Sequence record: PP942979.1 | Length of the DNA stretch: 64,000 nt | Strand: one strand, 5' to 3' | Part shown: positions 6,809 through 62,636 of the stretch, piece after piece | Layout: each line of letters begins with the position of its first letter | How positions within the stretch are numbered: the stretch's first letter is position 1 | Position numbers and translations under genes: made by a program | Notes under the pieces: model-generated | The model's database searches: none | Told to the model about the DNA's origin: nothing | What the model saw: only the letters and a program-made list of their open reading frames with translations

Positions 6809-6810
6809 TT

Positions 6811-35682: not shown

Positions 35683-35685
35683 GGT

Positions 35686-46564: not shown

Positions 46565-46767
46565 TAGATATACTCGAAGGTTTCTTCCTGAATAAGACCT
46601 TTACCGTGAATCTGCTCGAACACTTCGATCTCGTCATCGGTATACGGCTCGGCTGCTTCTGCAATCACATCGTAACTGACAGATTCGTCTTTGCGGCCTT
46701 CACCGTAGTAATGAACAGGCTTGACGATGCGCCAGACAGGGACTTGTATTAGTTCGCGCTTTAACAT
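46564..46767 (-). CDS. Hypothetical protein
   Basis: 67 aa, coupled at both ends. Confidence 0.65.
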   Translation of the reverse strand: MLKRELIQVPVWRIVKPVHYYGEGRKDESVSYDVIAEAAEPYTDDEIEVFEQIHGKGLIQEETFEYI

Positions 46768-46976
46768 TAGTGGAACACCGCAGTTGGTTCAACCCACAAT
46801 TCAGCAGCGTTATACTTTTTACGCAGCTCGTTCAGCACGGTATCAGACACAGGGCTGGTGGACGAGAAAATACACTGAGGCACTTTCTCTTCCTGACCTG
46901 TTACCGGATTAATATCGTGGTCGTGACGCATTACGTTCCAGCGTTTGTTTACGCGGATATTGATAGTGTGTTCCAT
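46767..46976 (-). CDS. Hypothetical protein
   Basis: 69 aa, first gene after CTGTAAAT at 47014. Confidence 0.65.
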   Translation of the reverse strand: MEHTINIRVNKRWNVMRHDHDINPVTGQEEKVPQCIFSSTSPVSDTVLNELRKKYNAAELWVEPTAVFH

Positions 46977-47038
46977 AGTTGTATGCCCAGGTTTGGTATG
47001 AAAGATACTGCTTATTTACAGTTTCTAGGCGTATAGAT

Positions 47039-47075
47039 AAAAAGAAGGGCCACCAGCAATGGCAGCCCCGTCTTT
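47039..47075 (-). terminator. Intrinsic terminator with tandem wobble
   Basis: GGGCTGCC-ATTGCT-GGTGGCCC then TTCTTTT. Confidence 0.75.
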
Positions 47076-47523
47076 AGTAGCGTCTTGGTTTCTTTGGCTT
47101 CTTAATCTTGGTGGACTTCGGACGCTTGATACGCTGCAATGCCTTACGTGCCTCAGCAATCTGACCAGACAGAGTAGCGCGTTGTTTCTTCACGGCATCT
47201 GTATCTTGGTCAGTGCCTTTCAGTTTATCAAGGCGGTTCCACTCTTTGACCAAACGATCAACGACAGCAGCACGACTAACACGTTGCTGATTGGTACGCA
47301 CAATATCCTGCTGCGTCTTTACCGAGCGTTGCGCTTCTAATACTTTGGCACGTCCTGACTCAATGCCTTTCGTATCACCGTCAGACTGTTTTTCGTTGAG
47401 CGTCTTACGTGCCACGGTTGCTCTGCGTTGTGCTCCTTTCAGATCATCACGCGAGTTCTCTAAACTGACTTTCGTTTCTTCAAGTGGGCTGGTACGCGCA
47501 CTCAAGCTAATGAGGATTTTCAT
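47074..47523 (-). CDS. Basic coiled-coil protein with MKILISLSA N-terminus
   Basis: 149 aa, Lys/Arg-rich tail. Confidence 0.7.
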   Translation of the reverse strand: MKILISLSARTSPLEETKVSLENSRDDLKGAQRRATVARKTLNEKQSDGDTKGIESGRAKVLEAQRSVKTQQDIVRTNQQRVSRAAVVDRLVKEWNRLDKLKGTDQDTDAVKKQRATLSGQIAEARKALQRIKRPKSTKIKKPKKPRRY

Positions 47524-47538
47524 AACGGCTCCAGAAAT

Positions 47539-47566
47539 GAAAAAGGGCAGCCGAAGCCACCCTTTT
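47539..47566 (-). terminator. Intrinsic terminator, tandem-wobble family
   Basis: AGGGTGGC-TTCG-GCTGCCCT then TTTTCATTTC. Confidence 0.85.
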
Positions 47567-47654
47567 GTAGAATGGCGCGCTATGCACCCGACTGTTAAGT
47601 CTACTACGGTTATTTTACCTCGCAGTAGTCAGCGAGGAGATTGGGATCACCTCC

Positions 47655-48191
47655 TCATGCTGATTGAAGATCGACAACTTCCTCGTCTTCTATATCAGCG
47701 GCAGACCACGAACGAAGCACGGACGCATTGCCGCGATTGCCCGTCAGCATAGATTTAACTGCTGGTTTGGCATCGCGCTCTGCATAGTAGTTGCTAAGAG
47801 CGTTCTCATTAGCGAACCACAGAATGGAGTGACCACCTTTCGGGCAGATCAGGAATTGTGCTGGACGCTGCGGAACGTTCAACGTCATATAAAAATCACC
47901 AGCACCAGTAGGACCCATCATAGGCATGGGTTTCATGATCTGCATAAAATCGTTGGCATCTTTAAGGCGAGTATCGCCTAACAGCCAGAGAGCACCTTCT
48001 TCACCTTCACGCACGGCAGACAATGTACCTTTGCGAGTAGTGATTGAACCGAATACATCCTGATCAAATCGAGCCAGACCAAAGATAAGCGATGCGAGTT
48101 TCTTTAAATCAGGAGTGGTGCATGGGCTATCAATTTTCGCCATGCCCTCAGACCCAATTGTAATCTTCGACAGTGATACAAAGATTTCCAT
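47655..48191 (-). CDS. Hypothetical protein with MEIFVSLSK N-terminus
   Basis: 178 aa, TAATTT promoter. Confidence 0.7.
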   Translation of the reverse strand: MEIFVSLSKITIGSEGMAKIDSPCTTPDLKKLASLIFGLARFDQDVFGSITTRKGTLSAVREGEEGALWLLGDTRLKDANDFMQIMKPMPMMGPTGAGDFYMTLNVPQRPAQFLICPKGGHSILWFANENALSNYYAERDAKPAVKSMLTGNRGNASVLRSWSAADIEDEEVVDLQSA

Positions 48192-48258
48192 TTATTGTCT
48201 TCCAGAGCTGTATGATTAATTGTAGTTAAAATTATCGTTCAGTCAGACATTTCTGAAA

Positions 48259-48292
48259 TAAAAATGGGCAGCACTTTGGCCACCCATTTTTC
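48259..48292 (-). terminator. Intrinsic terminator, tandem-wobble family
   Basis: ATGGGTGGC-CAAAGT-GCTGCCCAT then TTTTATTTC. Confidence 0.8.
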
Positions 48293-48301
48293 ACTTATTT
48301 A

Positions 48302-49585
48302 TCACTTCTTCTTTTTCTTTTTCTTCTTAGGCTCGTCGTCTTCTTCGTCGTCGTTGCCTAAATCAACAGTCAACTTACCGCTGTAGATGTTCGCCATCAC
48401 TTCGGTAATTCCAGTCTCCAGCATAATATCTGCCGGCACCGAAGTTGAGTTGAATGCCACTTCTGCATCAGCCAGAGCTTTCTGCAAATACACCAAACTG
48501 ACCAGATTGACTTTGATGTTGTCTTTCTTGATCATGTTCATGAACATCTTGAGGCCCGCAGACTGCCACTTGTTCGTTTCGGCGTAATGCCCCAACACAC
48601 CATGAATAATCCAACGAGCTTTCGCTACGATTGCACGTGGGTTGTTTGCTTCCCGCAGGAACTGAATAACGCCTATCAGGTCCATACTGAGATAAGCACC
48701 GATCATCTGAACGGCTTTCGCTTCCATGTCGATTTCTGGATCAGCAGCAGCCAGTTCAGCAACGAGGTTCTTATCAAAGTCTTCACCACCACGAACAGAG
48801 GCGTAGATGTTTTGCAGCATGGTGATTGCACCACGCATTTGTCCACCAGCGTACTCTGCTACCTGATGAAGTGCCGCTTCTGCTTTATCACGCGCCTTGT
48901 CTTTCTTCGGCAGGATATCAAGCTGACCACTGATCTCAATCAGGCGTTTATGAATCACGTCAGTTGCAATCGGTCTGATCGGCAGTTGCGTCATACGACT
49001 GATCATCGTGCCTTTCATCTTCTCAGGGTTCGTTGTTACGAAGATGAAGACTACGTGCGCTGGGGGCTGTTCGGTAATCTTGAGCAGCTTGGATTCAGCA
49101 GCACTGGACATGAGGTGCGATTCGTCGAAGATGAACACACGACGTTTGAACATCGGGCTTAACGGGGCCGAGTCAACAATCTTCTGTGAGCCCTCAACTT
49201 TACCTGCATCGCCGCCCATATCGAACTCTTGTTCGTCAGGATGTGCGCCACGGTCGTGCATCTCACACGAACGACACTTACCGCAGGCAGAGAACGAATC
49301 ACAGTTGATGTACTTCGCTACCAGACGTGCGAACGTTGTCTTGCCTGAACCGAGATGACCTGTGATGATCATTGTTGACGGAATCGTTTTCGACTTCTGC
49401 CAACCTTTCATGATCTTCACGATGTGGTCTTGACCAACGTAATCTTCGATACGCTTCGGTCGGAACTGATCTGCAAAGTTAACCGTGGTCAACTCAACAG
49501 ACTCGGAAGAACCGCTTTTCTTTTTCGATGGCTTATCGTCACCGAACGAACGCGACTTCTTCTTTTTCTTTTCTTCTTTCGCCAT
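48302..49585 (-). CDS. dnaX: Clamp-loader ATPase, DnaX gamma-like
   Basis: GHLGSGKT, C4 zinc module, VFIFDESH, SR motif, GQMRGAITML. Confidence 0.9.
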   Translation of the reverse strand: MAKEEKKKKKSRSFGDDKPSKKKSGSSESVELTTVNFADQFRPKRIEDYVGQDHIVKIMKGWQKSKTIPSTMIITGHLGSGKTTFARLVAKYINCDSFSACGKCRSCEMHDRGAHPDEQEFDMGGDAGKVEGSQKIVDSAPLSPMFKRRVFIFDESHLMSSAAESKLLKITEQPPAHVVFIFVTTNPEKMKGTMISRMTQLPIRPIATDVIHKRLIEISGQLDILPKKDKARDKAEAALHQVAEYAGGQMRGAITMLQNIYASVRGGEDFDKNLVAELAAADPEIDMEAKAVQMIGAYLSMDLIGVIQFLREANNPRAIVAKARWIIHGVLGHYAETNKWQSAGLKMFMNMIKKDNIKVNLVSLVYLQKALADAEVAFNSTSVPADIMLETGITEVMANIYSGKLTVDLGNDDEEDDEPKKKKKKKK

Positions 49586-49649
49586 TTTACTTCGCCCTTT
49601 ATTTTGATGCGTTACACCAGTAATTTACAGATTTTAGACAAAAAGAAAG

Positions 49650-49678
49650 GACCACATCTCAAAGTGAGAGGGTCCTTA
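49650..49678 (-). terminator. Intrinsic terminator
   Basis: AAGGACC...GGTCCTT then TCTTTTT. Confidence 0.65.
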
Positions 49679-49724
49679 TTTATAATGTGTTGGATGATAA
49701 CACATCGGCAGTGGGCGCTGACGA

Positions 49725-49922
49725 TTAGGCAAAGCACATTTCCCAGCGTGGTACAACGCGGAAGAACTGCTTAAAGTTGGACGGCGGATTCTTCTTGATT
49801 GATTCAAGTTTCTGTTCCACTACGTCATAATCTTTTATGCCACTCTCTACGGTGTGAGTGGTGAATGTACCGTCAGCCTGAATCAAATCGGCGACAACAC
49901 GGTAGCTAGGTTTACGAAGCAT
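49725..49922 (-). CDS. Hypothetical protein
   Basis: 65 aa, AGGAG SD, CTGTAAAC upstream. Confidence 0.65.
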   Translation of the reverse strand: MLRKPSYRVVADLIQADGTFTTHTVESGIKDYDVVEQKLESIKKNPPSNFKQFFRVVPRWEMCFA

Positions 49923-50015
49923 CTATTCTCCTGTGTAAAAATTTTCTCGTTCTTCTGAATTATGTTTACAGTTTACTGCGAGTAGTCACACAAGGATAAA
50001 GTCAGACAAATCTTA

Positions 50016-50344
50016 AACTCCAATAGGCTCTCAATCAAGAACATATTGGAGTCCACCCTCGCCAGATGACGGTCTAGCCAGGGCTTTCTCCCCGTGTCTT
50101 TCAATTGCACCGACACGGTAGCGCTCGCGGTCTTACGCTCTCTGTGGCTTGCGAACATATCGGCAGGTAGCAGGGTTCGCAGCCTAGAGCAGCCGCTTTC
50201 GGCCATTAGCGATAACGCGGTGTTACGCTAGTTGGCCTGACTCTGTGGCCGAGTCTGTACAAAAAAGAGTTCGGCCTATCCCCAAATTCGGCAAAAGAAA
50301 CAGGCCGAACTAAACAGTCAGCGCAAACTCCATATGCACTGTTT
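50016..50344 (-). ncRNA. Candidate structured non-coding RNA, family not recognised
   Basis: Eight consecutive stem domains cover the gap; G.U pairs favour minus strand; CTAATTT promoter motif at 50356-50362. Confidence 0.65.
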
Positions 50345-50390
50345 TGTACTGTTACAAATTAGAAACATCCTGCAATAAATCAGACAATTC

Positions 50391-50978
50391 TTAGTCTAAC
50401 ATTGGAATAAGATTTTGCAGGAAATGCTCACGATCAAACGACGAAATTCTGTGCGGATGATCGATGTGCATGTTCCAGGGTTTGTTGAATAACAGAACGC
50501 TACGAGGCAGCACCAGTTGCTCACCGACGCGAGTGAACTTGTCACGCACGGCAGTAACAGGATTATCATCGACAAGGACGTAGGTACCTTCGCCGTGTAC
50601 TTCGTTCAGGTACGCAATCTTGTCAGGATGCTGGCGGCTATCCAAAACATGAATGTGATCGAACAATGACAAGTGCTTCTCCAAAGACTTGCGCGTGTTG
50701 CGTTCGCCTTTAGGGTGATAGCCTCGATGCGTACAAATGCCCGCACTGAAACCCTCACGCACCAACATTGCAACTGTCTGGATGAAGTAGTCACGCATGT
50801 TGGCTTCAAGCATGAAACGGCCGTCTTCCAACATATCAACGAAAGGCTCAAGCCCATTCTCTGGCGTGATGTAGGAATCGGTACCTGGATAGATTCCCCA
50901 GTTCATCAGATAGCACAACATAAAGTTATGCGTGTCGAATGCTGTGTCGTCCATGTCGAAGAAAATCTTCTTAATCAT
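50391..50978 (-). CDS. HAD-family 5'(3')-nucleotidase-like protein
   Basis: IFFDMDDT, CTHR, VLVDDNP, LLFNKPWN. Confidence 0.8.
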   Translation of the reverse strand: MIKKIFFDMDDTAFDTHNFMLCYLMNWGIYPGTDSYITPENGLEPFVDMLEDGRFMLEANMRDYFIQTVAMLVREGFSAGICTHRGYHPKGERNTRKSLEKHLSLFDHIHVLDSRQHPDKIAYLNEVHGEGTYVLVDDNPVTAVRDKFTRVGEQLVLPRSVLLFNKPWNMHIDHPHRISSFDREHFLQNLIPMLD

Positions 50979-51286
50979 TAGTGCCTCGTACTTTTGACAA
51001 CCAAAGGAATGTCATTGATGAAAGCGAGAGTTAGCAACTCACCATTATGGCGCAATCGCATTTCATCGGCATTCATTACGACAACAATATCGGCGAGAGG
51101 ATCTACCTTGAACGTTGGGACTTCGATAAGCTGTGCTTCAACTTCGCTTTCTTCGTCGTCAACAACGTAATAGCCTCCATACATTAATACAGTGTCACCA
51201 TCAATAACCATATGCAGTGGTTGATCGATGTAGTAACCGTTACCGTCATCTGAGTCGAACTCAAAGTCGAAGTCCTCGTCGCCCAT
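50978..51286 (-). CDS. Acidic hypothetical protein
   Basis: 102 aa, coupled to HAD gene. Confidence 0.65.
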   Translation of the reverse strand: MGDEDFDFEFDSDDGNGYYIDQPLHMVIDGDTVLMYGGYYVVDDEESEVEAQLIEVPTFKVDPLADIVVVMNADEMRLRHNGELLTLAFINDIPLVVKSTRH

Positions 51287-51289
51287 AGT

Positions 51290-51865
51290 CTATGCCCTCA
51301 AATCAACCAAGATAGATGCAGACAAATCTCGGAGCATGTCACGACCGAGAGGTGTGTACATTGTTTGGGAAACTACAATTCGTTCAAGGAAGAGGCGAGA
51401 ACTGATAACGTCCTGCCCTGTACGCTGTTGAACGAAATCAATGATGGCTGATGGCGGTTGAATGAGGAACGTTAAGATCTCAGCGTCGTGCAGGACGCTA
51501 CCCATCTCTGTAACAGGACGCATCTCTGTTTCCTGATCGAGAATGTATGAGATCACACGGTCTTCATTACCAATATTGCGATGTGTTTTAAAGAACTTGC
51601 GAGCAGCACTCACGGTGCGCATAAAATCGTAGTCCGAAGAAGTCGGCATACGGAGAAAGAGTGAAGCTAAGAGCAGGTTTATTTCTAACTGCGGGCCTTG
51701 CTCGATGTTTAACATGGCATGAGAGGTCAGTACCACATCTAACGAGAAGTCACGAGTGTAGAGCGGGTGAGAGTTTGCTGTCTGATCAAAGTAGTCGAGA
51801 GCCATGTGCAGCCCTCGACGTTTTAACAGGTGCTCTGCCTTGATACGGTTCAGGCGGTGCATCAC
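51290..51865 (-). CDS. Degenerate HD-domain-like protein
   Basis: HD-fold spacing (LLLASLFLR; VLHDAEI) without the HD dyad. Confidence 0.45.
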   Translation of the reverse strand: MMHRLNRIKAEHLLKRRGLHMALDYFDQTANSHPLYTRDFSLDVVLTSHAMLNIEQGPQLEINLLLASLFLRMPTSSDYDFMRTVSAARKFFKTHRNIGNEDRVISYILDQETEMRPVTEMGSVLHDAEILTFLIQPPSAIIDFVQQRTGQDVISSRLFLERIVVSQTMYTPLGRDMLRDLSASILVDLRA

Positions 51866-52836
51866 TCGGCGCCACGAATCTCTTTGAGAGAGTTCTTGAT
51901 CGCTTTGCGCAGCGTCTTACCAGTGTCGATGCCGTCGATGTGGCGAGCGAACACATTCGCAAACAACGTGGTCGGATTCTTCATGATTGCTTTATCGAGG
52001 TCAGGACGACCCTCAGCAATCTGAATCTCACCCGGCCAGAGTTCAGCAACTGCCTGACTATCATTAGCGGCAATCAGCTCCAGCTCACGGACCGAGATAC
52101 TGTTCTGGCGAGCAATCGTGCGGAAGATCATGTCAACGAAAGGCAGCAGGTCTTCGGACACAACGTTCTTCACGTCTTTCGCATCACCAGCTCTCTGGAA
52201 ATCTTCCAGCAGTCCTTCGAGGTGAGTCTGCGTGATCTTCTGGACGTTACGCAGTTTCTTGAACAGCATCATCCAGCGGACTTTGCGTTTGGAACTCAGC
52301 AGGTGAGTCCACACTGATTCGCCTAAGGCAATCATCAGTTTGTTGTAGACGTCAACCGATACGCAATCACGATCAACAAATACCGTGATCTCGTCATGCC
52401 ACTCGTCCTTCTTGAACTTGGTTCGGAAGGAGTGAGTCTTCGACCCTGACTGCTGGACGAAGTTGATTTGTTTGCAGCGACGAATAGCTTCCTGAAGGCC
52501 ATACTTAGCAATCACCTTCGGAAGTTTCTTCACGGCCAGACGACAGGCTTTAGCGACTTCTGCTTCGCGCCCGTAGAGAGCGAGGCGAGGCAGACCACCA
52601 TAGACAGGCATTGATGCGTAAGGTCGGACAGTGACGCCACACACGGACATACCCGGCTCAGGGTCTGGACCCAAGACCGCAAGCACGTCACCTGCCTTAG
52701 GACTGAACTTGATCGTTTCTGTTTCCGGCGCACCAAGCGTGTTAGCCAGAATGCCAACAGTGTTGCCGGTTGCCAGAACAAGATGATTCTTATTACCCTG
52801 CCTTACGACAAGGTAATCATTTTCACTATGTTTCAT
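51862..52836 (-). CDS. Hypothetical protein, possible degenerate zincin fold
   Basis: 324 aa; LMIALGESVW where HExxH would be expected. Confidence 0.55.
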   Translation of the reverse strand: MKHSENDYLVVRQGNKNHLVLATGNTVGILANTLGAPETETIKFSPKAGDVLAVLGPDPEPGMSVCGVTVRPYASMPVYGGLPRLALYGREAEVAKACRLAVKKLPKVIAKYGLQEAIRRCKQINFVQQSGSKTHSFRTKFKKDEWHDEITVFVDRDCVSVDVYNKLMIALGESVWTHLLSSKRKVRWMMLFKKLRNVQKITQTHLEGLLEDFQRAGDAKDVKNVVSEDLLPFVDMIFRTIARQNSISVRELELIAANDSQAVAELWPGEIQIAEGRPDLDKAIMKNPTTLFANVFARHIDGIDTGKTLRKAIKNSLKEIRGAE

Positions 52837-52844
52837 AACGGCCT

Positions 52845-53363
52845 TTAATAGAGTGAGTCAGCGATATTGTAGGTGTGGACTTCCGCGGTATGTTGACGGA
52901 AGATACGACCTTCGGATTGCTCGAACGTTGCAGGACGCCAGTCTTCTTTGACTTCAATAGAAACGAGGACTTGCTCGTCCCACATATCACCGTCTTCGAG
53001 AGCATCAGCGATCATGCGAAGCGAAGCAGGACGGTCCTTGCCAAGATGCGATAACTCCGCAATCATGACACGCGGCTTGGTACGATCACCAAGTTCATCG
53101 AGCGCCCAGCCAAGCTCAGACAGAGAACGAATCTGGTACGCTTCAACTTGAGCGTTACCACGATACTCGTCTGGTCCGAAATAAACAATTTCAAAATCGT
53201 TGACGTCGGTTTGACTGACAAAGAAGTGAGGTGCGTCCGCCAGAATAGAAGGCGAGGCGCACATCTGGAGCAAGCCCATGTATGGATTATGAATCTCATG
53301 GGCTTCTACCGAACAGGACTTCCCAGCAAAACTTTTGATTATGCTGTGTGCGAGATTATTCAT
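52845..53363 (-). CDS. Hypothetical protein
   Basis: Start moved to ATG 53363 (GAGG SD). Confidence 0.65.
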   Translation of the reverse strand: MNNLAHSIIKSFAGKSCSVEAHEIHNPYMGLLQMCASPSILADAPHFFVSQTDVNDFEIVYFGPDEYRGNAQVEAYQIRSLSELGWALDELGDRTKPRVMIAELSHLGKDRPASLRMIADALEDGDMWDEQVLVSIEVKEDWRPATFEQSEGRIFRQHTAEVHTYNIADSLY

Positions 53364-53370
53364 TGTAACC

Positions 53371-53565
53371 TCAGTTCTCAGGAGTAGGTTTGGACGAGCT
53401 TTGGGTATAACTGAAACCATAGCCCACCATTTTATTTTGCTGCCGCTTTGCTCGCTGCTTGCGTTGGATCTCGGCGTCACGTTTGTCCAGCTCGTCAAAG
53501 ATACCTACGCGACGAGCATAGCGAAACTTCGGATGTACGGAGATATGTTTGACGATAGCTGTCAT
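53371..53565 (-). CDS. Small basic protein
   Basis: 64 aa, GAGGA SD, CTGTAAAC upstream. Confidence 0.65.
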   Translation of the reverse strand: MTAIVKHISVHPKFRYARRVGIFDELDKRDAEIQRKQRAKRQQNKMVGYGFSYTQSSSKPTPEN

Positions 53566-53604
53566 GCGTTATTCCTCTATGTTGATTGCTGTTAGTTTAC
53601 AGTA

Positions 53605-54129
53605 TCAATCACTCTTGCCCATTTGACGTTCGAGCACGTAAGCCAGATAGTCATCCCACGTAGCGAAACCATCTTTGGCCAACATACGGTCAAACTCGCG
53701 GTCAGACTTAGATCCCTTAGGAAAGCGAATCTTGTTTGACAGACGCTGGAGTCGGTCGTACATAAACCGAGACTGCTTAACAATCGGATTCTTCTCAGGT
53801 AAATGATTCTGCAACAATTTGTAGCTGAACACCAGAGGGAAGTCTTTGTTAGGCACCGTAACACCCAACAGCCTATGTACCGTGTTTAGGTACTGCTCGA
53901 TTTGAGCATGACATTCTGGGTGAGCATAGTACCAGTCGTCCAGTGAGGCCAAGCCATGAGTTTCCTCATAAACCATTGCGTCATACATGACCATGAGAAT
54001 CGGCTTCTCTTCCTTCTTTTCTTTGTACGCCTGAAACAAAACTGGGCAAGTCCCATATTTGTTTTGCAGCATCGTTTCCAAGATTGCTGCGAAGCGTACA
54101 ACTTCATATTCGGTAAGTACCTTACTCAT
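53605..54129 (-). CDS. Hypothetical protein
   Basis: 174 aa, GGAG SD. Confidence 0.7.
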   Translation of the reverse strand: MSKVLTEYEVVRFAAILETMLQNKYGTCPVLFQAYKEKKEEKPILMVMYDAMVYEETHGLASLDDWYYAHPECHAQIEQYLNTVHRLLGVTVPNKDFPLVFSYKLLQNHLPEKNPIVKQSRFMYDRLQRLSNKIRFPKGSKSDREFDRMLAKDGFATWDDYLAYVLERQMGKSD

Positions 54130-54132
54130 ACT

Positions 54133-55749
54133 TCACTCCGAGAATATCTTTTTGTCAGAAAACTTCTTGAGCACAAACTCGGCACAATCGCTCGTCACGC
54201 TGTCTCCATCAACGCAGAGTAGCGCACCGTCATGCTCAAGGGAATACACACCCTTGACGTTCGGACAATTAAGAATAGCATCGAACAAATACAAACTCTC
54301 CCAGCCAGACAGCATGTGGTTGAGAATGCGTTTGTCAATCTTCTTGCCTGTGTCGTCAGGATCAGGATCGTAGTTAGATCCTGTCGGGCACTGGAGTACC
54401 CCATACTCGGGTCTTCGTGCATTTTTATTCTTGCGGAACTTAGACCGATACACGTTAAGCAATTCTTTGATCGCAAGATACAGAGGAGTCATCCTCGTGT
54501 TCCAGTCTAAGATTTCCTCTTTCACTCTCGAAGCTGGTACGAAGCGAGCTAACTCTTTATAGACGTTGCTGTACTTCGTTGGTTCAAGTTGACCTGCCGA
54601 AAAAATTGTACCATACAAACAAACCTTGGCTGCGCGTCTGTCAAGTTTCATAATGCGGCTAATGTCGTCAACAGAACTAATCTGGTCGAACATCGCACAC
54701 GCAATACCGTAAGCGTCAAACTCCCTACGCAACACGTTGAACTGGCTGGACTTCATATCCCAGTTAGTGCCAATCGTGTAGCACTGCTCCTTCAAGTCCG
54801 AAGGTAAGTTCTGGAACCCACCACCGACCTCGAACAATCGCCCGCCAATCTGAGACAGCCTATACTTCGGCCAGTAGCGAACGACAAGAGGTTTCTCGCT
54901 AACGATCTGAACAGGACCCGACACTATGGTATCGAGTAACGTTTTCACCTGCAGGTATTGCTTCTTCGCCTTGTGATTAGCAATCAACGATTTGTCTTCT
55001 AAATAAGCAAGTATAGGGTCGATGTTCACTTCATTAGGCATCAGCTTATCAAGTACCTGTCGATAAAGAGCACGGCCACTAAGCACCTTAGAGTTTCCTC
55101 TGTCTCGGTTGCGATCAAGTGAACTAAGATCATGCGCAGGGCGCTTGAACGGTAGCTTAGAATTTTTCTGAATCTGTGACCACACCGTCACACCATAATC
55201 CTCCCTTAAAATTTTAAGAGGACTATAGAAACGAATGCGGTACAAAATATCGTAATGCGACTGCGGCTTAAAGTGCCCGTACATCCCGTCTAAGATTTCA
55301 GGACGCATCCTAAACTCTCGACTAAGGCCCTTTTCTTTGCTGTAAGGCTTCGTTTCAAATACGTTAGCCATCAACCACTCAAGGGACCTACCGTACGTGC
55401 CTTTTTTAGACTTGGCATATCGCCCGACAGCAACATTATCGCCACCACGCTTGTGACCGAAGACCATTGGCAGTTTTTCTTTTCCTAACGAGCTTGGAAA
55501 CGGCACCCAGACCCGTCCAAACTTCTTTTTCTTGTGTTTACGTGCAGGATAAAGACTGCATTGAAGAATGTGCCAGAAGAATAAGTTCAATTGAGCACGA
55601 AACGCAGATCGCTCGCTCTCGGGGCCGTCGTAGGGACAGGCATCAAGAACATGTTTTCGCACCCACAAAACAACTTCCTTCTCCTGGTAAGAGGGGTTCG
55701 TGATTAATACTGGCCCCTGACCGGAAACGATTCGTTTTTTCATGTTCAC
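54133..55749 (-). CDS. Divergent family-A-like polymerase without exonuclease (TV-Pol-like)
   Basis: GGRLF...FQNLP, motif A DMKSSQ, motif B RRAAKVCLYG, NHMLSG, motif C EHDG. Confidence 0.7.
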   Translation of the reverse strand: MNMKKRIVSGQGPVLITNPSYQEKEVVLWVRKHVLDACPYDGPESERSAFRAQLNLFFWHILQCSLYPARKHKKKKFGRVWVPFPSSLGKEKLPMVFGHKRGGDNVAVGRYAKSKKGTYGRSLEWLMANVFETKPYSKEKGLSREFRMRPEILDGMYGHFKPQSHYDILYRIRFYSPLKILREDYGVTVWSQIQKNSKLPFKRPAHDLSSLDRNRDRGNSKVLSGRALYRQVLDKLMPNEVNIDPILAYLEDKSLIANHKAKKQYLQVKTLLDTIVSGPVQIVSEKPLVVRYWPKYRLSQIGGRLFEVGGGFQNLPSDLKEQCYTIGTNWDMKSSQFNVLRREFDAYGIACAMFDQISSVDDISRIMKLDRRAAKVCLYGTIFSAGQLEPTKYSNVYKELARFVPASRVKEEILDWNTRMTPLYLAIKELLNVYRSKFRKNKNARRPEYGVLQCPTGSNYDPDPDDTGKKIDKRILNHMLSGWESLYLFDAILNCPNVKGVYSLEHDGALLCVDGDSVTSDCAEFVLKKFSDKKIFSE

Positions 55750-55789
55750 ATCATGATTACCTGATTTTTCTATCGTTTCTTTACAGTTT

Positions 55790-56400
55790 CAGACAACTCT
55801 TAACCCGAAAGCTACTACAGCGCTAATGCTAGGAAGGCTAAGGCTACAGCAGGCTTGCTACAACGCTCATGGCATGCTTCAACAATAGTTCTACAGGTAC
55901 ATCTTTAGGCGGCACGTTTCAGAGACATAGAAAATAAAGAAACCATGTCCTCAGCAGCCCGAACTATAGTCCATACGCACTATAGGTAGCGATCTAGCGG
56001 AAATCCCTAGGTCGTCTAAACCGTGTAAATTTTCCGTCAAAAACAGTCCGTTTTTTAACCAAACGCCCTTTTTGACTCTGAAAATGAGGAAAATCCGAGA
56101 AAAATCAAGGACTTTCTCCTCTTTTCTACCTCGGTGAAACTCAAATTGCATCATCAGGTTGAGTATTTGAGATATCGGCATGTACATGCAGCTTCATCGC
56201 ACTATAGTCACGCGGAATTAGCGCCTCAGTCCCAAAACCCTCGCGCTAGGAGCTATAACCCTGACGTAGAACCGTGTGCTGAGGGCCCAAAACATCAAAC
56301 CGTCAATAGACTGGTTATTTGGTACCAATACAGAGGATTCTTAATCCTCACACGTAGACGTCAAAAGGAGATGCTCCTAGCGCGATTCCATAGGAAACTG
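55790..56400. other. Origin-like non-coding region
   Basis: ~600 bp with no credible gene; GCTA/CTACAG/ACTATAG repeats, phased A/T tracts, palindromes, 13-bp inverted repeat. Confidence 0.5.
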
Positions 56401-56401
56401 G

Positions 56402-57061
56402 TTACTTTTTGCGCGATACTTGTTTTCCGAGTTTTACGCCGATCTGCGTCATAATACGCTTAACGGTCTCTCCATCGTGCTCTTCCATAGCGTTTGCGAG
56501 CCTTTCGCCCTGTTCGCGCGATAGCTCAGGCATAACCATTTTAAGCATCTGCGAACGCAGTTTTGCGCTCTTGGATTTGCCTTTCGAGACAGACACGCCT
56601 TCATTCGCCTTAAGCGCACTGCTAATCGCTTTCTGAACACGACGATCACCAAAAATGTCGCCGAATATGTCACCGAACAGGTCCTTGAACGACAATCCGC
56701 CGCCCATAATGTCGTCTTTCGTGAAACGAACAGGTACACCCAGCGCATTCACTTTATTGCAATGCACCGATTCGACCTGATTCGTTGTACGTCCACCAGC
56801 ACGGAAGTTCTCGTCAGGGCGTGACGCTTTGCCCTCTGCACCGGGCTTAGTGTTGCCGTTGCGCAAATCTGGATCGCCTTCAACCTGTTTGTTTTGATCA
56901 AACATATCGTCGGCAGTTTCGCTTTGATTTGGGTCGAACGGGATCTTACCTGTCAGCTTGTTTGCGTCTGGCCAGCTATCAGGAATATCAGACGCAGGCT
57001 GTGCCTTGTTCGTCATATCACCGTTTGCTTCACCACTCAAACTGATCTTAATACGAGTCAT
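56402..57061 (-). CDS. Hypothetical protein with MTRIKISLSG N-terminus
   Basis: 219 aa, GGAG SD, late operon. Confidence 0.7.
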   Translation of the reverse strand: MTRIKISLSGEANGDMTNKAQPASDIPDSWPDANKLTGKIPFDPNQSETADDMFDQNKQVEGDPDLRNGNTKPGAEGKASRPDENFRAGGRTTNQVESVHCNKVNALGVPVRFTKDDIMGGGLSFKDLFGDIFGDIFGDRRVQKAISSALKANEGVSVSKGKSKSAKLRSQMLKMVMPELSREQGERLANAMEEHDGETVKRIMTQIGVKLGKQVSRKK

Positions 57062-57070
57062 GCTAATCTC

Positions 57071-58180
57071 CTATCGAATTTTATAGCCTTTGAAAATGTT
57101 ATACGCAATCTCTTTGCGCTGTACGGGACGAGTGACGCACACCCATTCCCACTGATCGTTTTTCGCTGTGCGTTTCTTCGGTGCTTCCATAACTTTCAGC
57201 ACGTAGTTTTTGAAAGGCAGAACGAGAATGTCTTCCGGCTCAATCGCGCCGCTGCGAGCAGGCAGAACTACCGTGATGTTGCCGACAGTCAGTTCCTGAT
57301 CGTAGTTGAGCACGTTTGCTTCTTCGCTGATGTTGCCTTTAACAGGCGGAACACCTAAGTCAAAGATCATGGTGCAGTGTGTGAATGCCTCAATGCCTTT
57401 GACGCGAATCGTTACATGCTTGCCTCGCCAGCGCTCCAGATTCTCTGCTGTCAGATCGACTTCAACACCGTTCACCAGCAGCATAGGACGTGGGAAAGCA
57501 GGAAGCAGAGTTTCATTCAGACGTACCGAATAAGTCGCCTGCGTAAAGTATTTTGGAATAAGCTGATCAAAATCAGCGTAGCCGTCTTTACGTACCTGCC
57601 TGAATGTTGCAGGGCTGGTGGACTGATCAAGAGTATAGCCAGTCAGCTCTTTAATATGATGATGCGTAGCGATATTGTAGATGAAGCCAGTGCTGATAAA
57701 GCCTGGCACAACACCCTGACGGAAACAGATACCGCAGTTCGCAACGTTGCCGCCGTCCCATTTAACGTCGAACTCCTCACCTGAGTCTACGCCCATGATA
57801 TCGGCTGCGTCCATAACGGCGTTCATGCCATCATCAATATCGTCGAGGGTTACTGCTTGACGTCCACCGCCAAACATGCCCTTGCCTACGGTATCGATCT
57901 TAACGCCGCCTGACATTGAATCAGATTCTCGGCCAAGGCTTTTCATGCCTGCCGGAATATTGTCCATAATGTCGTTCTCAACCTTGTTGCAACTACAGGT
58001 GAGACCCATCTTCGCTTTCTTGAAGATGACAATATCGGTGGCGTCAACCGCAAGCGCCTGTTCGACTTTGGATTGCACGACCTTCTGAATACTGTCGAGG
58101 CGTTGCTGGACACGTTCAGTTTCGTAGGTCTTGTGCCTGTCATAGGTATTTCGTGGTCTCCCACGTTCAATCCAGCTCAT
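57071..58180 (-). CDS. Putative head-closure/neck protein with Zn motif
   Basis: CSC...CGICFRQG..PGF and EDILVLP; TAATTT promoter. Confidence 0.55.
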   Translation of the reverse strand: MSWIERGRPRNTYDRHKTYETERVQQRLDSIQKVVQSKVEQALAVDATDIVIFKKAKMGLTCSCNKVENDIMDNIPAGMKSLGRESDSMSGGVKIDTVGKGMFGGGRQAVTLDDIDDGMNAVMDAADIMGVDSGEEFDVKWDGGNVANCGICFRQGVVPGFISTGFIYNIATHHHIKELTGYTLDQSTSPATFRQVRKDGYADFDQLIPKYFTQATYSVRLNETLLPAFPRPMLLVNGVEVDLTAENLERWRGKHVTIRVKGIEAFTHCTMIFDLGVPPVKGNISEEANVLNYDQELTVGNITVVLPARSGAIEPEDILVLPFKNYVLKVMEAPKKRTAKNDQWEWVCVTRPVQRKEIAYNIFKGYKIR

Positions 58181-58279
58181 AAAAGTTCTCCTCTGTGTGC
58201 TTGAAATTAGTGACTAAGAATTTAGGACCTTCTGCCTAGCAAATACTTATTTATAGCATGTTAAATCACGGAGCCTAAC

Positions 58280-58828
58280 ATGCGTATTCTTTCAGGCGAC
58301 CCGGGAAAGGTTAACTTCGCGTTGTCTGTTCAGGAGTTTAAGGACAATCGCATTAACATACTCGGCACCCGGATGTTTCAGCATCCTATTCAAAACCTGC
58401 ATTACGATATGCGCCAGCCGGTCAAAGAGTTCATGAAGGAACTCGAAGACATATGGAAGCGCTATGGACCGTTTGATGCGATGTGCTTTGAACGATTCCA
58501 GTCGCGCGGATTGGGCGGCAACACCATTGAAGCAATCAGTCTTATGCTTGGTGTGCTGTCAATGTTCGCGCTGAAAAAGAATTGCCCGATCGATCTGATC
58601 ACGGCCAGTCAGTGGAAGAACGCGTTTAACCGCACTATGGACCTCAAGGGCTATTACGCGGAATACAATCTGACTTCGAAAAAGAGCCGCAAAGCGATTC
58701 ACGAATTTGACGCAAGCCTTATTGGCATGTATACCTTCTATCGCCAAACGAACCGGAAACCTTTTGTAGGCTTCAACAGAATCGTTGACGTTTACGTTCC
58801 GAAGTTCTTGGCAGCACCTGTACTGTGA
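58280..58828 (+). CDS. ruvC: RuvC-like Holliday junction resolvase
   Basis: RILSGDPG, CFERFQ, HEFDAS RNase-H-fold acidic residues. Confidence 0.8.
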   Translation: MRILSGDPGKVNFALSVQEFKDNRINILGTRMFQHPIQNLHYDMRQPVKEFMKELEDIWKRYGPFDAMCFERFQSRGLGGNTIEAISLMLGVLSMFALKKNCPIDLITASQWKNAFNRTMDLKGYYAEYNLTSKKSRKAIHEFDASLIGMYTFYRQTNRKPFVGFNRIVDVYVPKFLAAPVL

Positions 58829-58835
58829 GGAAAAC

Positions 58836-59201
58836 ATGGAACACGAACAACTGCTCGCTCTCGTTAAAGATGTAGTGTCTGAATTTGGCACTCCTGTATA
58901 CCTCGATCGTGGTCAGGTTGGCGAGAACAGCCGCACGTATGCCACTATCGAAACTCTGATCAACGTTCAGTCCGACGCACAAGGCACGACGCTGCTGCAA
59001 GATCTGAAAGCGAAGATCGCAGAGTATGTTGAACTGCTGCGTACCGAAGGCACGACGCGCTCTATTGACGGAGCCGTTCAGCGCCTGGAACCTGTTACTC
59101 AGGGTCAGAAGTTTACCTACCGCGACCCAATGGTAAACGAAATTCCCAACGGTGTGCTGTACTCTGTCTCCATTGGTTTTCCCATGTTTGTGGCCAATTA
59201 A
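58836..59201 (+). CDS. Hypothetical protein
   Basis: Start moved to ATG 58836 (GAGGA SD). Confidence 0.65.
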   Translation: MEHEQLLALVKDVVSEFGTPVYLDRGQVGENSRTYATIETLINVQSDAQGTTLLQDLKAKIAEYVELLRTEGTTRSIDGAVQRLEPVTQGQKFTYRDPMVNEIPNGVLYSVSIGFPMFVAN

Positions 59202-59247
59202 TCTGTAAATATCCTTACTTGGTTAACATGGCTCGTGGGATATAGAA

Positions 59248-59940
59248 ATGGCGAAGTTGAAGAAAGAACAAAAGACAGTTGTGGCTAAAAAACCTGCGAA
59301 GGTCAAGCAGTCCAAAGCCGTCAAAACAAATAAAGGAAAAGCAGTAGCTATTCATGTTGTTCAGGACACGCGTCCGATTGTGCATTGCCCTGAAATGGAA
59401 GACAAGCCTCAACCGTTTCGTTTTCGTGGCCAGTGCCCGATCACAACATGTCAGTATTGCACCCGCGAAACGCCTAACGGCTGCATGGCGCTTGACCGCA
59501 AAGAAGCCGCCGACCGTTCAATCTCTAACAGGGAGATCGCTTATTACAAACGTGGCCTCTTCCCAGAACTCAAAGAGATGGATCAAAAGCAGTTGGACAA
59601 TACGATTCGACGCGCACAAAATCGTACCCGTACTGCTATCTGTCTTACTATGTTTATTGCCGGGATTGATGATAGTGATTGCGATAGGTCTTTTCAGTAT
59701 GTAGAAGGCCGCAGTCGCATTGTCGATCAGGTTCATAACTATCTGGTGCAAACGTTCAATGACTACCGTCCGTGGATGCTGGCGTATCTCGACGACGAAG
59801 AACGTTTCTCTCAGATGGTAGGCAAGATAACCAATTCTGACTTTAATTTAGGTATGGCACTGCGGTTAACGCCTCGTAAGTATCAGACGTTCTGCCAGTC
59901 GCTGCAAAACCTTAAACAATCTGGAGACTCAAATGAGTGA
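59248..59940 (+). CDS. Cys-cluster protein with Lys-rich N-tail, putative regulator
   Basis: CP...CPITTCQYC...C then SNREIAYY helix; CTGTAAAT at 59203. Confidence 0.6.
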   Translation: MAKLKKEQKTVVAKKPAKVKQSKAVKTNKGKAVAIHVVQDTRPIVHCPEMEDKPQPFRFRGQCPITTCQYCTRETPNGCMALDRKEAADRSISNREIAYYKRGLFPELKEMDQKQLDNTIRRAQNRTRTAICLTMFIAGIDDSDCDRSFQYVEGRSRIVDQVHNYLVQTFNDYRPWMLAYLDDEERFSQMVGKITNSDFNLGMALRLTPRKYQTFCQSLQNLKQSGDSNE

Positions 59941-61702
59941 AATTTTCTCTCTCGATCAGTATCGCGCTATGATTAAGCGCAACATCCTGAGCGAGCCTCA
60001 GATGCTGGTGAAGAACCAAACCCAACCGCTGGGCCAAATCTCTTTCCAGTGCCCTGGTGACAACTTCAAAATGAAGGACGTCATCATCCCAGCAACTCGT
60101 AACGCCGTTGACCTGACTCAACAGGCACCGTTGGAAAATCTGCTGGCGTGTAGCCAACTGAAATCTCTGATTCAGTTGCAGCGCATCGCGCTGCTTAACC
60201 CTGAAGAGATGCCGCAGCCGGGTGAAGGTATCTCTCAGCCTTCTCTGTCTCAGCCGCCTGTCGCTGGCGCGCTGTCTGTTGACGGCACAACTATCCCGAA
60301 CGCTGTTGTGATTGTTGAGCAGAACGGTAACGTTTGGACCAGCACTTCTAACGGCAGCGGTGTCTTCACTGTTGACGTGTCTGGTCTGGAAGAAGGCCCG
60401 TTCTCAATCACTGTAACAGCGACCGGTTATACTCCTGCACGTTTCGACTACGAAGCAGGCCCGCAGCCACGTCAACCAATGCCTGAACCGACTGTACACG
60501 CTGTCTTTAAAGAGACGACTGTTTCGGGAACGACTGTTGCGAATGCTAATATCGTTGTATCTGTGGCGAGCAAACAGTTTACGGGTCAGGCTGACGATGC
60601 TGGTGCGTTCTCTGTGGATGTTGACCCGCTGCCGTTTGGCACTATCTACGTGACCTTCACTGCTGATGGTTATCTGGACAAGCAGGTTGATGTTGTTGTC
60701 GATAGCGTTGCCGGTTTGGCTCAGGTTGATGCAACCTCATTCCTGTCTACTGCACTGTCCGGTAAGGCAAACCCGAACGGTGAAGTCGAAATCATGATCG
60801 ACGGTCAGCCCAATCAGTTCGCTACTGCTGATGCGCAGGGCAACTGGACTGCGACTGTCGGCGCGATTAAAGGCGCTGTGTCTATTCGTGCTCTGGAAAT
60901 TGATGGGTACGATGAAGCGACTGCAACCATGCAACCGACCAAGCGTCAGTTTGGTGCAATCGTTGTTGATGACGCTGATGCGTTCGGCGAGACCCGTACC
61001 GAAGTCACAGGTAGTATTGCTGGTCTGAATGCCGAAGCGAATGACATTGCTGTTACAGTAACAGTTCAGGCTGGCGTGTACGAAGGTACTGTCAATCTGG
61101 CTTCTGGCACTTTCAACATCTCTGGTGTTGATGCAAAAGCTGGTGTGGGTTCTACTGGTGTGGTCAACGTTACCTCTGCGTTCTACGAAGATGGTTCAAC
61201 GTCGTTCACTATTCTGGAAGAGTTCTCTCCGCCTACGTTGCAGCAAGCACAGGATGGCCAGACTGCGGTAGTCGGCGATACAGCCGCTTCTACTCAGGTT
61301 AAAATCACGATGAACGGCGAAACCAAAACTGCGTCTTCAAATGCGCAGGGTGCGTTCAGCGTTGGCGGCTTCACTAACGTTGTCCCAGGTCCGGTCACCA
61401 TCGAACTGTCTCGCGCTCAATATCTGACTGCAACCTTCCAGGTCACTCAGGTAGTTCAAGCGCTGGCGCAACTCGACGCTGATCTGAAAGCTGGTGAAGA
61501 GACTGTTGCAGGTCAAGCAACTCCTGGCTCCAATGTTACCTTGACGCAGGGTAGCGTTACTGGTGACGCAGTAGCAGATGCAAGCACTGGTGAGTTCATT
61601 ATTACGCTGTCCGGCCCTCTGGTTGAAGGTCAGGCTCAGCTTGTGGCGCAACATGCTGGTTATGTTGACTACACCGACACCTTAGCTGTCGCGGCAGCTT
61701 AA
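59933..61702 (+). CDS. Ig-like repeat protein (decoration/Hoc-like candidate)
   Basis: Repeated G.T.P.A.V...G....A.AD..G.F.V units; N-domain paralogous to next gene. Confidence 0.75.
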   Translation: MSEIFSLDQYRAMIKRNILSEPQMLVKNQTQPLGQISFQCPGDNFKMKDVIIPATRNAVDLTQQAPLENLLACSQLKSLIQLQRIALLNPEEMPQPGEGISQPSLSQPPVAGALSVDGTTIPNAVVIVEQNGNVWTSTSNGSGVFTVDVSGLEEGPFSITVTATGYTPARFDYEAGPQPRQPMPEPTVHAVFKETTVSGTTVANANIVVSVASKQFTGQADDAGAFSVDVDPLPFGTIYVTFTADGYLDKQVDVVVDSVAGLAQVDATSFLSTALSGKANPNGEVEIMIDGQPNQFATADAQGNWTATVGAIKGAVSIRALEIDGYDEATATMQPTKRQFGAIVVDDADAFGETRTEVTGSIAGLNAEANDIAVTVTVQAGVYEGTVNLASGTFNISGVDAKAGVGSTGVVNVTSAFYEDGSTSFTILEEFSPPTLQQAQDGQTAVVGDTAASTQVKITMNGETKTASSNAQGAFSVGGFTNVVPGPVTIELSRAQYLTATFQVTQVVQALAQLDADLKAGEETVAGQATPGSNVTLTQGSVTGDAVADASTGEFIITLSGPLVEGQAQLVAQHAGYVDYTDTLAVAAA

Positions 61703-61754
61703 TCCTTTTACAGGGGCTTCGGCCCCTAATAGAAATGAAATTCGGAGATTTACA

Positions 61755-62408
61755 ATGAGCAAGCAAAAGACTACCGTACAGCCGATTACTCTCGCAACCT
61801 ATAACGAGCGCTACGGCAAAGACACAGTTGCACCGATGTATGTCGCTAACCGTACCGAGCCGCGTGGCAACGTAATGTTCAGCGCGAAAGACGATCTCGG
61901 CCAGCCAGTGCCTGTACTCGTACCTGCAACTTTCATCCCGATCGATCTGACCCAGCAGGCTACTAAAGACAGCCTGTTGCAGTCTACTCACCTGCGTCGC
62001 GCCCTGACTATGGGCCAGCTGGTTATCATCGACACCAAGAGCGCCGAAGAGTATCTGCGTAACAGCAAGATCGCTCAGACCGAGATGCGTAATCTGAATA
62101 AGATGAACGCGTCTATCGCTGCTGACCTGGGCGAAGAAACTGGCGAACTGGCTGCAATCGATCTGGGCGGCGGTAGCAAGAAGAAAGAGATCCTGTTCGA
62201 AGACGGTGATCAGTATTCTTCTAACCAGTTCGTTAACGCATTCATCATGCGAGCGCAAGAAGACAGCGGCGAGTCCGACGACAATCTGGAACGTGAATTC
62301 CTGTCTCGCGGTCTCGGCCTGCCTGTGTCTGAGCTGAACATTCTGCGCGAGCATATCACTCGTCCGGCAATCGTTGAGCTGATCGTTCAGGCGCTTGACG
62401 ACGCGTAA
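61755..62408 (+). CDS. Head-associated protein candidate
   Basis: NRTEPRG...VPAT..PIDLTQQA shared with N-domain of 59933..61702. Confidence 0.6.
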   Translation: MSKQKTTVQPITLATYNERYGKDTVAPMYVANRTEPRGNVMFSAKDDLGQPVPVLVPATFIPIDLTQQATKDSLLQSTHLRRALTMGQLVIIDTKSAEEYLRNSKIAQTEMRNLNKMNASIAADLGEETGELAAIDLGGGSKKKEILFEDGDQYSSNQFVNAFIMRAQEDSGESDDNLEREFLSRGLGLPVSELNILREHITRPAIVELIVQALDDA

Positions 62409-62423
62409 TCCAAAGCTACAAAC

Positions 62424-62464
62424 AAAAAAAAATGGGAGGCCCCGAAAGGAGTCTCCCATTTTTA
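62424..62464. terminator. Bidirectional terminator between convergent genes
   Basis: A-run, AATGGGAGGC...GTCTCCCATT, T-run. Confidence 0.85.
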
Positions 62465-62635
62465 TTACTGCTGCTGTTCTCTCATGCGATCAAGAAACGC
62501 TTTACCTGCGCCTGGCACAAGCACTCGCGGCTCGAAAGGAATCTTATTGATTCTGCGCTGCATGTTACGGCGAAAGCGTTCACGTAGTGCCTGAACGGTG
62601 TGTTGCTTAAACTGTGATCTGAATTTCAAAGCCAT
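62465..62635 (-). CDS. 56-aa basic protein (not in ORF track)
   Basis: MALKFRSQFKQHTVQALRERFRRNMQRR...; starts 1 nt after primase stop. Confidence 0.6.
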   Translation of the reverse strand: MALKFRSQFKQHTVQALRERFRRNMQRRINKIPFEPRVLVPGAGKAFLDRMREQQQ

Positions 62636-62636
62636 T

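Follow-up and report, generated by a model that had tools for sequence, protein, structure and literature searches.

What use does a jumbo phage that encodes a complete replicase and a DnaG-type primase have for a second polymerase without an exonuclease? The question is raised by a gene on the minus strand of a 64,000-nucleotide (nt) stretch of sequence record PP942979.1, the whole of which was analyzed and is referred to here as the window. The gene, at 54133..55749, encodes a 538-amino-acid (aa) protein that is 99.8% identical to one encoded by Erwinia phage phB78 (262 kb, Alexandravirus), and the window is that of an Alexandravirus-type Erwinia jumbo phage. Full-length homologues occur in 51 phage records, from jumbo phages of Erwinia, Dickeya, and Yersinia; all are annotated as hypothetical, except for one “putative helicase,” and a literature search found no paper mentioning the protein. 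The original prediction, made from the letters of the DNA, was of a family A polymerase acting either as a primase or as a single-subunit RNA polymerase (RNAP). We find it well supported that the protein is a TV-Pol-type, exonuclease-less enzyme of the PolA fold, a subtype with an N-terminal domain of its own. As to function, the best explanation, which we hold at slightly less than even confidence, is a DNA-templated DNA polymerase serving replication, most likely as a primase-polymerase. The gene and its parts are as follows:

54133..55749, minus strand: TV-Pol-type polymerase gene, 538 aa; a single open reading frame (ORF) with a GTG start, an ATG at codon 3, and the stop codon at 54133-54135
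55021..55749, minus strand: N-terminal domain, residues 1-243, alpha/beta by DSSP
54136..55020, minus strand: polymerase core, residues 244-538, from the AlphaFold2 model, Foldseek, and the motif alignment
54757..54759, minus strand: codon of the predicted catalytic Asp331 of motif A (D in 65 of 66 aligned members)
54229..54231, minus strand: codon of the predicted catalytic Asp507 of motif C (D in 62 of 63 aligned members)

The ORF is real, but the extent first given to it, 54133-55786, ends 37 nt upstream of the actual start at 55749. Conservation among the homologues, including those only 43-45% identical, begins near residue 12. Thus, the 538-aa form is right, and the GenBank coding sequence of phB78 (L001 12283-13617), which starts at an internal Met and specifies 444 aa, is truncated; the 94 N-terminal residues that it leaves out are conserved in relatives 43% identical.

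Curated sequence models do not recognize this protein. Neither the protein itself, nor 44 relatives, nor a profile built from them had a match in Pfam, NCBIfam, PADLOC, or the PDB sequence set, and this includes the PolA model PF00476 and the PolA chains of the PDB. The sole match in PHROGs was a family of unknown function. Just 53 relatives came out of an exhaustive HMMER scan covering 1.84 billion cluster representatives, a profile search of a 5.8-billion-protein set added none, and alignment by hhalign with the phage's own replicase was collinear and not significant (E 0.05, probability 1%). Kinship emerges at the level of structure. In the AlphaFold2 model, built from a 68-sequence alignment (pLDDT 92.1, pTM 0.88), the C-terminal ~295 residues form a PolA-type thumb, palm, and fingers, and the N-terminal ~243 residues form a separate domain. 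When the model was compared with the PDB by Foldseek, the first 21 matches were all family A DNA polymerases (E 4e-5 to 1.6e-3, probability 0.99-1.0, ~300 columns), with Mycobacterium smegmatis Pol1, Taq, Bst, the apicoplast polymerase, DpoZ, and T7 DNA polymerase among the top ones; T7 RNAP, POLRMT, and Pol gamma came next in rank. The PolA-like fold that had been proposed for the protein is therefore upheld by structure comparison. Against predicted viral structures (BFVD), matches from outside the family were phage PolAs mixed with long viral replication proteins, including a “putative DNA helicase/primase/polymerase” of Qinghai Lake virophage, a Zamilon “DNA replication protein,” and a Pyramimonas orientalis virus protein.

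The core is laid out as a two-helix thumb (residues 244-276, with helices at 244-255 and 259-276), a template-contacting beta-hairpin bearing R304, motif A, an O-helix-like motif B, a QG-type motif, and motif C. Four PolA motifs are collinear with those of Klenow and of the phage's own replicase, and comparison with the retrieved sequences of E. coli PolA, T7 gp5, and T7 gp1 gave these correspondences:

Arg hairpin: GGRLFEVGGGFQNLP (R304); Klenow TGRLSSTDPNLQNIP (R668)
Motif A Asp: D331 (NWDMKSSQ); Klenow D705; T7 RNAP D537
Motif B: K375, Y379, F383; Klenow K758, F762, Y766; T7 RNAP K631, M635, Y639
Minor-groove motif: N477, S481-G482, then E484; Klenow N845, Q849-G850; QG in most relatives
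Motif C: H506-D507-G508 (SLEHDGAL); Klenow H881-D882-E883; T7 RNAP H811-D812-S813

Both Asp motifs read from the sequence at the outset, DMKSSQ and EHDG, which contain the metal-binding Asp pair, are present and (near-)invariant, along with R304 and K375, and so are the Tyr and Phe then placed at the equivalents of Klenow 762 and 766, as checked against the Klenow and T7 sequences. The hallmarks of family A, namely the motif A Asp, the Lys and aromatics of motif B, and the His-Asp of motif C, can all be located, and the minor-groove motifs QNLP and QG are DNA-polymerase-like. Across 68 relatives, R304, D331, K375, E484, D507, and G508 are invariant or nearly so, which argues that the polymerase is catalytically intact and an active enzyme. 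Around the motif B Lys, the position four residues on (K+4) is aromatic, with Y in 56 of 67 members, where T7 RNAP has Met; K+8, which is F383 here, is F in 47, M in 10, N in 5, and Y in 3 of the 67; and K-4, the Arg of RxxxK, is only partly conserved, as R or K in 40 of 67.

The steric gate calls for more care. It had been stated that Gln sits at the position of Klenow E710 and that the gate Glu is missing. The Glu is indeed absent, but Q336 falls on E710 only in an ungapped alignment. This Gln, conserved in 61 of 66 members, is comparable to Q708 of PolA, whereas position 338 is variable (N in 34, E in 7, T, S, and others), and CQLEILR, the reading in some members, is near the SQIELR of PolA. 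Because the family pattern S-[SC]-Q-[LF]-x mirrors the S-Q-I-E of PolA, it is more likely that Q336 corresponds to Q708 and N338 to E710. The replicase does keep the gate Glu (DYSAHE), as had been noted. In the 538-aa protein, neither the steric-gate Glu (E710) nor the Glu after the motif C Asp (E883) is present; Q336 or N338, and G508, stand in their places. With the gate Glu of PolA and the selecting Tyr of T7 RNAP both missing, the residues suggest relaxed sugar selection for incoming nucleotides and not an enzyme restricted to RNA.

Evidence that the protein belongs with the TV-Pols comes from its distant relatives. A family profile aligned by hhalign to MAP_030 of Microcystis phage Ma-LMM01 with a probability of 99.1% (E 8.7e-19, 403 columns, N-terminal domain included), and to ORF1 of the 7.2-kb Polaromonas plasmid pW9NP1 equally well (99.1%, E 8e-19). 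MAP_030 is flanked by two transposases, and from this place it is very probably the TV-Pol of Iyer et al. (PMC2579912); pW9NP1 ORF1 lies directly upstream of RepA (RepA_C), ParA, and a serine resolvase. Further contexts come from weak but significant relatives of the 538-aa query. One (P0058) directly follows a D5_N/DUF5906/Pox_D5 helicase gene; another (P0067) is two genes upstream of a DnaB-type helicase (DnaB_C); a third (P0049) is accompanied by an excisionase-like helix-turn-helix protein, an IS200/605 transposase (Y1_Tnp), and an integrase. In a Desulfobacula metagenome-assembled genome (L024 6267-16618), the genes that share an island with a 613-aa homologue encode DUF5131 and Schlafen/AlbA_2 proteins, a tyrosine integrase, a MORC-like HATPase, and a DnaJ-domain protein. 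Within a metagenomic element (L026 1684-3906), the D5-like helicase adjoining a TV-Pol-like gene bears domains resembling archaeo-eukaryotic primase (AEP), RepB_primase and PriCT_1. A quick maximum-likelihood tree separated a mobile genetic element (MGE)-type group, with D5, DnaB, integrase, or RepA neighbors, from a phage-type group that includes the jumbo-phage clade. TV-Pols were defined in 2008 by Iyer, Abhiman, and Aravind through such contexts (PMC2579912), and because the distant relatives adjoin RepA and a resolvase, a D5-like helicase, DnaB, or integrases, these neighbors together with the two hhalign results support the TV-Pol assignment made earlier. The protein also has the minimal TV-Pol core, that is, the two-helix thumb, the Arg hairpin, the two Asp, and the fingers RxxxK with its partly conserved Arg, and a nuclease domain is neither fused nor linked to it. 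A D5-like helicase, integrase, resolvase, or transposase is linked to the gene in the distant relatives but not in the window.

The N-terminal domain is common to the MGE-type relatives and the Ma-LMM01 protein, and a hidden Markov model of it detects many MGE-type members, collinearly. It carries a conserved FFWH helix and a winged-helix-like helix with a beta-hairpin (R121, W125, R144, R147). Neither an exonuclease model nor an exonuclease fold matched residues 1-245, which agrees with the claim that the exonuclease is absent. When these residues were modeled alone (pLDDT 76), Foldseek returned nothing below E = 1; the best match had E 1.6, and the matches were scattered among MarR, PadR, and winged-helix proteins. 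Thus, the impression that this half of the protein looks DNA-binding was not borne out by a structural neighbor. Nor can a T7-RNAP-like or clear winged-helix N-terminal domain be claimed from the fold search.

The gene is part of a larger unit that has been exchanged between phages. Its components are listed here:

53581..56400: mosaic cassette of 2.8 kb, comprising the small ORF, the polymerase gene, and the upstream region (blastn break points)
53605..54129, minus strand: 174-aa ORF, starting 4 nt past the polymerase stop, in the same cassette
55750..56401, minus strand: upstream non-coding region, co-inherited with the polymerase gene
55778-55787: promoter-like ACTGTAAAGA, a variant of TCTGTAAATA, 26 nt upstream of the polymerase GTG start
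55899-55919 and 56008-56029: two invariant blocks, at a fixed distance from the start in 8 related loci
56126-56401: lineage-specific insert of 276 nt, also in the near-identical phB78 and absent from AD1, SNUABM_1, SNUABM_2, and Y3

The flanks (44128-53580 and 56401-64000) align to Alexandra-type phages at 79-84% DNA identity, whereas 53581-56400 cannot be aligned to them save for ~150-200 nt encoding the Arg-hairpin and motif A region. With AD1/SNUABM_1-type phages, alignment runs through the cassette at 85%. The difference is equally plain at the protein level: relative to Alexandra-type phages, neighboring proteins are 85-97% identical and the polymerase only 40-45%. The break points are sharp and match the ends of the flanking genes. 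The polymerase gene, the upstream non-coding region, and the small downstream ORF have been exchanged jointly as one cassette, which is a new finding. The product of the small ORF is a candidate accessory subunit. It has zero Pfam or PHROG matches; a counterpart exists in the Y3-type cassette (53% identity), and Alexandra-type cassettes have a small overlapping ORF of their own in the equivalent place, whose 156-aa product showed no similarity to the 174-aa protein by BLASTP.

Within the upstream region of the Y3/AD1-type cassette, the two blocks at 55899-55919 and 56008-56029 are invariant amid varying surroundings, and each is single-copy in the window. Block 56008-56029 is also an imperfect inverted repeat of the promoter-like region 55775-55795. 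In the 276-nt insert, CGCACTATAG occurs once, and 56241-56253 and 56373-56385 form a perfect inverted repeat of 13 nt. No tRNA was found in the upstream region, there was no Rfam match at gathering or E<=1 thresholds, and covariation support for an RNA structure was not found. The CTATAGTGCG repeat was not enriched in the window.

A shorter motif does recur. Allowing at most one mismatch, the 10-nt TCTGTAAATA has 12 copies in the window against 3.5 expected, a count reached in 0 of 100 shuffles:

9612-9621, 15498-15507, 18927-18936, 28266-28275, 35637-35646, 38147-38156, 47013-47022, 49622-49631, 59202-59211, 63735-63744, and others: copies of TCTGTAAATA

Most of these copies lie shortly upstream of a gene start and on the same strand, including those of the PolA, DnaG, and clamp-loader genes. 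Conservation is confined to ~10-12 nt, with no -35 element, and the motif resembles a -10 or T4-late-type promoter element. Since its variant ACTGTAAAGA, whose CTGTAAA is kept in all relatives, precedes the polymerase gene as TCTGTAAATA precedes those for PolA, DnaG, and the clamp loader, the pattern suggests that the polymerase gene is co-expressed with replication genes. PaBG and Lu11, which are relatives of this phage, have been assigned to a wider group of jumbo phages that is reported to encode sigma factors and a gp33 homologue, and no RNAP (PMC7824862, PMC7412058), with which a T4-late-like TCTGTAAATA agrees. Five near-identical hairpins (6781-6812, 18947-18978, 33679-33710, 35656-35687, and 47540-47571), which on the minus strand read GGGGUGGC-UUCG-GCUGCCCC followed by a U-run, resemble intrinsic terminators, and in two of the five cases the promoter-like motif comes directly after the hairpin.

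The surrounding genes describe a phage that is well provided for DNA replication, in the group of homologue carriers known as the PaBG/Lu11/Y3 “Lupandier” group (PMC7412058):

15717-18887, minus strand: replicase, 1056 aa, matching PF00476 (E 3e-52) and a 3'-5' exonuclease model
48302-49585: clamp loader
62637-63695: DnaG-type primase

RuvC and an SbcC-like protein are also encoded in the window, and the polymerase gene sits among the RuvC, DnaG, clamp-loader, and SbcC genes. The ~230 residues that precede the exonuclease domain of the replicase had no Pfam match in the scan; the PaBG paper describes a uracil-DNA glycosylase domain fused to PolA in the same phage group. Downstream of the polymerase gene are a 324-aa protein (phrog_17197, annotated “peptidase”; 51862-52836) and a HAD/PNK-like protein of 195 aa (50391-50978), and metagenomic relatives with polymerases of only 27% identity have the same arrangement (L003 4908-6423; L021 9522-11621).

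Four readings of these data have to be weighed. In the case of a primase-polymerase, a template or origin-like DNA would be held by the fused N-terminal domain, the PolA active site would join the first nucleotides into a short primer, and the proofreading replicase would extend it; the gene, the upstream DNA, and the small ORF would then be a cis-site plus trans-factor unit, travelling as the 2.8-kb cassette. TV-Pol kinship and the exchangeable cassette make an enzyme that starts or patches DNA synthesis likelier than one that transcribes, and a role in replication rather than transcription is what we infer. Further, the joint exchange of a protein gene and adjacent non-coding DNA, as in replication-origin modules, fits circumstantially with the proposal of an origin-specific primase for the adjacent region; a primase-polymerase function as such is plausible. 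A more specific version, that the cassette is a self-contained replication-initiation unit in which the N-terminal domain recognizes the upstream blocks and the primase-polymerase primes phage DNA there, seems to us rather unlikely; if true, a polymerase-based origin and initiator module would be swapped whole among jumbo phages, and a cis-site would for the first time be assigned to a TV-Pol. Several observations weigh against priming. As the original prediction already had it, the phage has DnaG, and with this primase and a full replicase present a second primase is not obviously needed. In the metagenomic helicase-AEP element, the PolA-fold protein may be the elongating enzyme, not the primase, because the helicase there has AEP-primase-like domains, and an elongation-only role is possible in that relative. 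The fold search offered no structural support for DNA binding by the N-terminal domain, and sequence-level family scans detected no signature of an oligonucleotide-binding (OB) fold or single-stranded DNA-binding protein (SSB) in the 174-aa ORF. No helicase, integrase, resolvase, or transposase adjoins the polymerase gene in the window. Finally, 55750-56401 has no GC-skew inflection and no iteron array, and its conserved blocks are single-copy, so that, with the tRNA, Rfam, and covariation checks also negative, the origin idea is without sequence support.

The second reading is that of an auxiliary, strictly primer-dependent DNA polymerase that fills gaps, bypasses lesions, or carries out recombination-dependent synthesis without proofreading and without priming, an explanation that is distinctly possible, if on balance doubtful. 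All DNA-polymerase-type motifs are retained, including the minor-groove readers R304 and QG and the aromatic K+4; the gene sits among recombination and repair genes (RuvC, SbcC, and the HAD/PNK-like phosphatase, the last of which co-occurs in distant relatives); a repair role has been proposed by Yutin et al. for other second, divergent phage PolAs (PMC11348598); and CcPol, the polymerase of a staphylococcal-cassette primase discussed below, needs a primer when alone (PMC7581432). However, relatives are found in replication-initiation modules of small replicons, adjoining RepA or helicases, and neither a conserved extra N-terminal domain nor co-exchange with non-coding DNA is expected of a generic repair enzyme. 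Priming or initiating synthesis is the mechanism best supported by context homology, with an auxiliary DNA polymerase nearly as likely. A remnant or semi-autonomous selfish TV-Pol module, maybe co-opted for phage-phage or phage-host conflict or for counter-defense, could also explain two deeply diverged cassette types at one locus with sharp breaks at gene ends and flanks ~83% identical, as well as the transposon-like insert that holds the Ma-LMM01 homologue and the bacterial island in which a homologue accompanies an integrase, a Schlafen-like protein, and a MORC-like ATPase. We consider this improbable: the cassette has no integrase, transposase, or terminal repeats, the 538-aa protein has no PADLOC match, and every one of the 51 related phage genomes found carries the gene in the same place, which makes it look like a fixed phage function. 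The case for a single-subunit DNA-dependent RNAP serving a class of phage promoters begins with the missing steric-gate Glu and with a motif C that reads HDG, without the Glu after the Asp, comparable to HDS in T7 RNAP; T7 RNAP and POLRMT are among the Foldseek matches and have the largest query TM-scores (0.38-0.42), and the extra N-terminal domain could bind promoters. But these matches are weaker than those to DNA polymerases (E 1.6e-3 to 5e-2, root-mean-square deviation 11-20 Angstrom), and the N-terminal domain compared alone with T7 RNAP gave E 4.6 and a probability of 0.02. The equivalent of T7 Tyr639 is Phe (Tyr in only 3 of 67 members), K+4 is aromatic as in DNA polymerases, and the gate-equivalent position is variable, with Glu in 7 members. 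No long (~20-nt) promoter recurs in the window, where the 20-30-nt upstream blocks are single-copy and only the 10-nt TCTGTAAATA is repeated; the wider PaBG and Lu11 group is reported to have sigma factors and a gp33 homologue, and the relatives are in replication modules, not transcription modules. The same residues, the non-T7 N-terminal domain, and the shortness of the one recurrent motif speak against the suggestion that the enzyme reads a phage promoter class, and we rate an RNAP as very unlikely.

Whichever of these holds, ~50 sequenced jumbo phages carry a second polymerase that all annotation pipelines have missed. The family supplies a compact, single-chain, well-modeled TV-Pol with an N-terminal domain, in culturable phages of tractable hosts. 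As it has neither the gate Glu nor the selecting Tyr, the enzyme lends itself to studies of sugar selectivity, and the cassette exchange hints at a specificity determinant worth mapping. Should the enzyme indeed prime, it would account for the way in which a polymerase active site can be adapted to begin synthesis de novo.

How, then, does the protein compare with known systems? With T7-like RNAP and POLRMT it has in common the palm and fingers fold, the two catalytic Asp, an extra N-terminal domain, and the lack of a Glu after the motif C Asp; unlike them, it has no equivalent of Tyr639 and no detectable T7-type N-terminal domain, and it has the QNLP and QG motifs of PolA. A closer parallel in circumstances is offered by divPolA2 and divPolA1 (Yutin et al. 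2024, PMC11348598), which likewise are second, highly diverged PolAs beside a regular replicase, lack an active exonuclease, have an N-terminal domain of no assignable fold, and match DNA polymerases and mitochondrial RNAP alike in structure. divPolA2 is not the same family. Alignment by hhalign with a 28-member divPolA2 alignment (AUR84708 and relatives) covered just 45 columns at the Arg hairpin, with a probability of 6.7%, and motif C is FDE in divPolA2 and HDG here; divPolA1 is set apart by its description, as it retains an inactivated exonuclease domain that is absent from the phage protein.

The precedent for a PolA-type primase is CcPol-MP, the PolA-SSB primase of SCCmec (PMC7581432; bioRxiv 10.1101/2022.12.02.518924). 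Both this enzyme and the phage protein are exonuclease-less family A polymerases of mobile DNA, an extra module is needed or proposed in both for template binding and de novo priming, and a small ORF directly follows the polymerase gene in both. CcPol is recognizably PolI-like (15-22% identity, with a “PolA” domain) and retains E710 and F762, whereas PolA models fail to detect the phage protein, which has no such Glu; its extra module is the fused N-terminal domain, and its operon has no helicase. According to the CcPol study, in which CcPol alone was primer-dependent, only the atypical CcPol-MP has been assayed among such enzymes (PMC7581432).

The nearest kin remain the TV-Pols, predicted in 2008 to be primase-polymerases on a PolA fold (PMC2579912), and among them those that have a globular domain at the N terminus. 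There are differences: the jumbo-phage gene has no adjoining helicase, integrase, or transposase and coexists with a PolA-exonuclease, DnaG, and a clamp loader; the Arg of RxxxK is R or K in only ~60% of its family; and its N-terminal domain is predicted to be alpha/beta, not all-helical. Yet with Ma-LMM01 MAP_030 it has in common the short two-helix thumb, the Arg beta-hairpin, the two catalytic Asp, the fingers Lys, and the lack of a nuclease domain, and the homology between the two proteins is full-length, with the N-terminal domain included.

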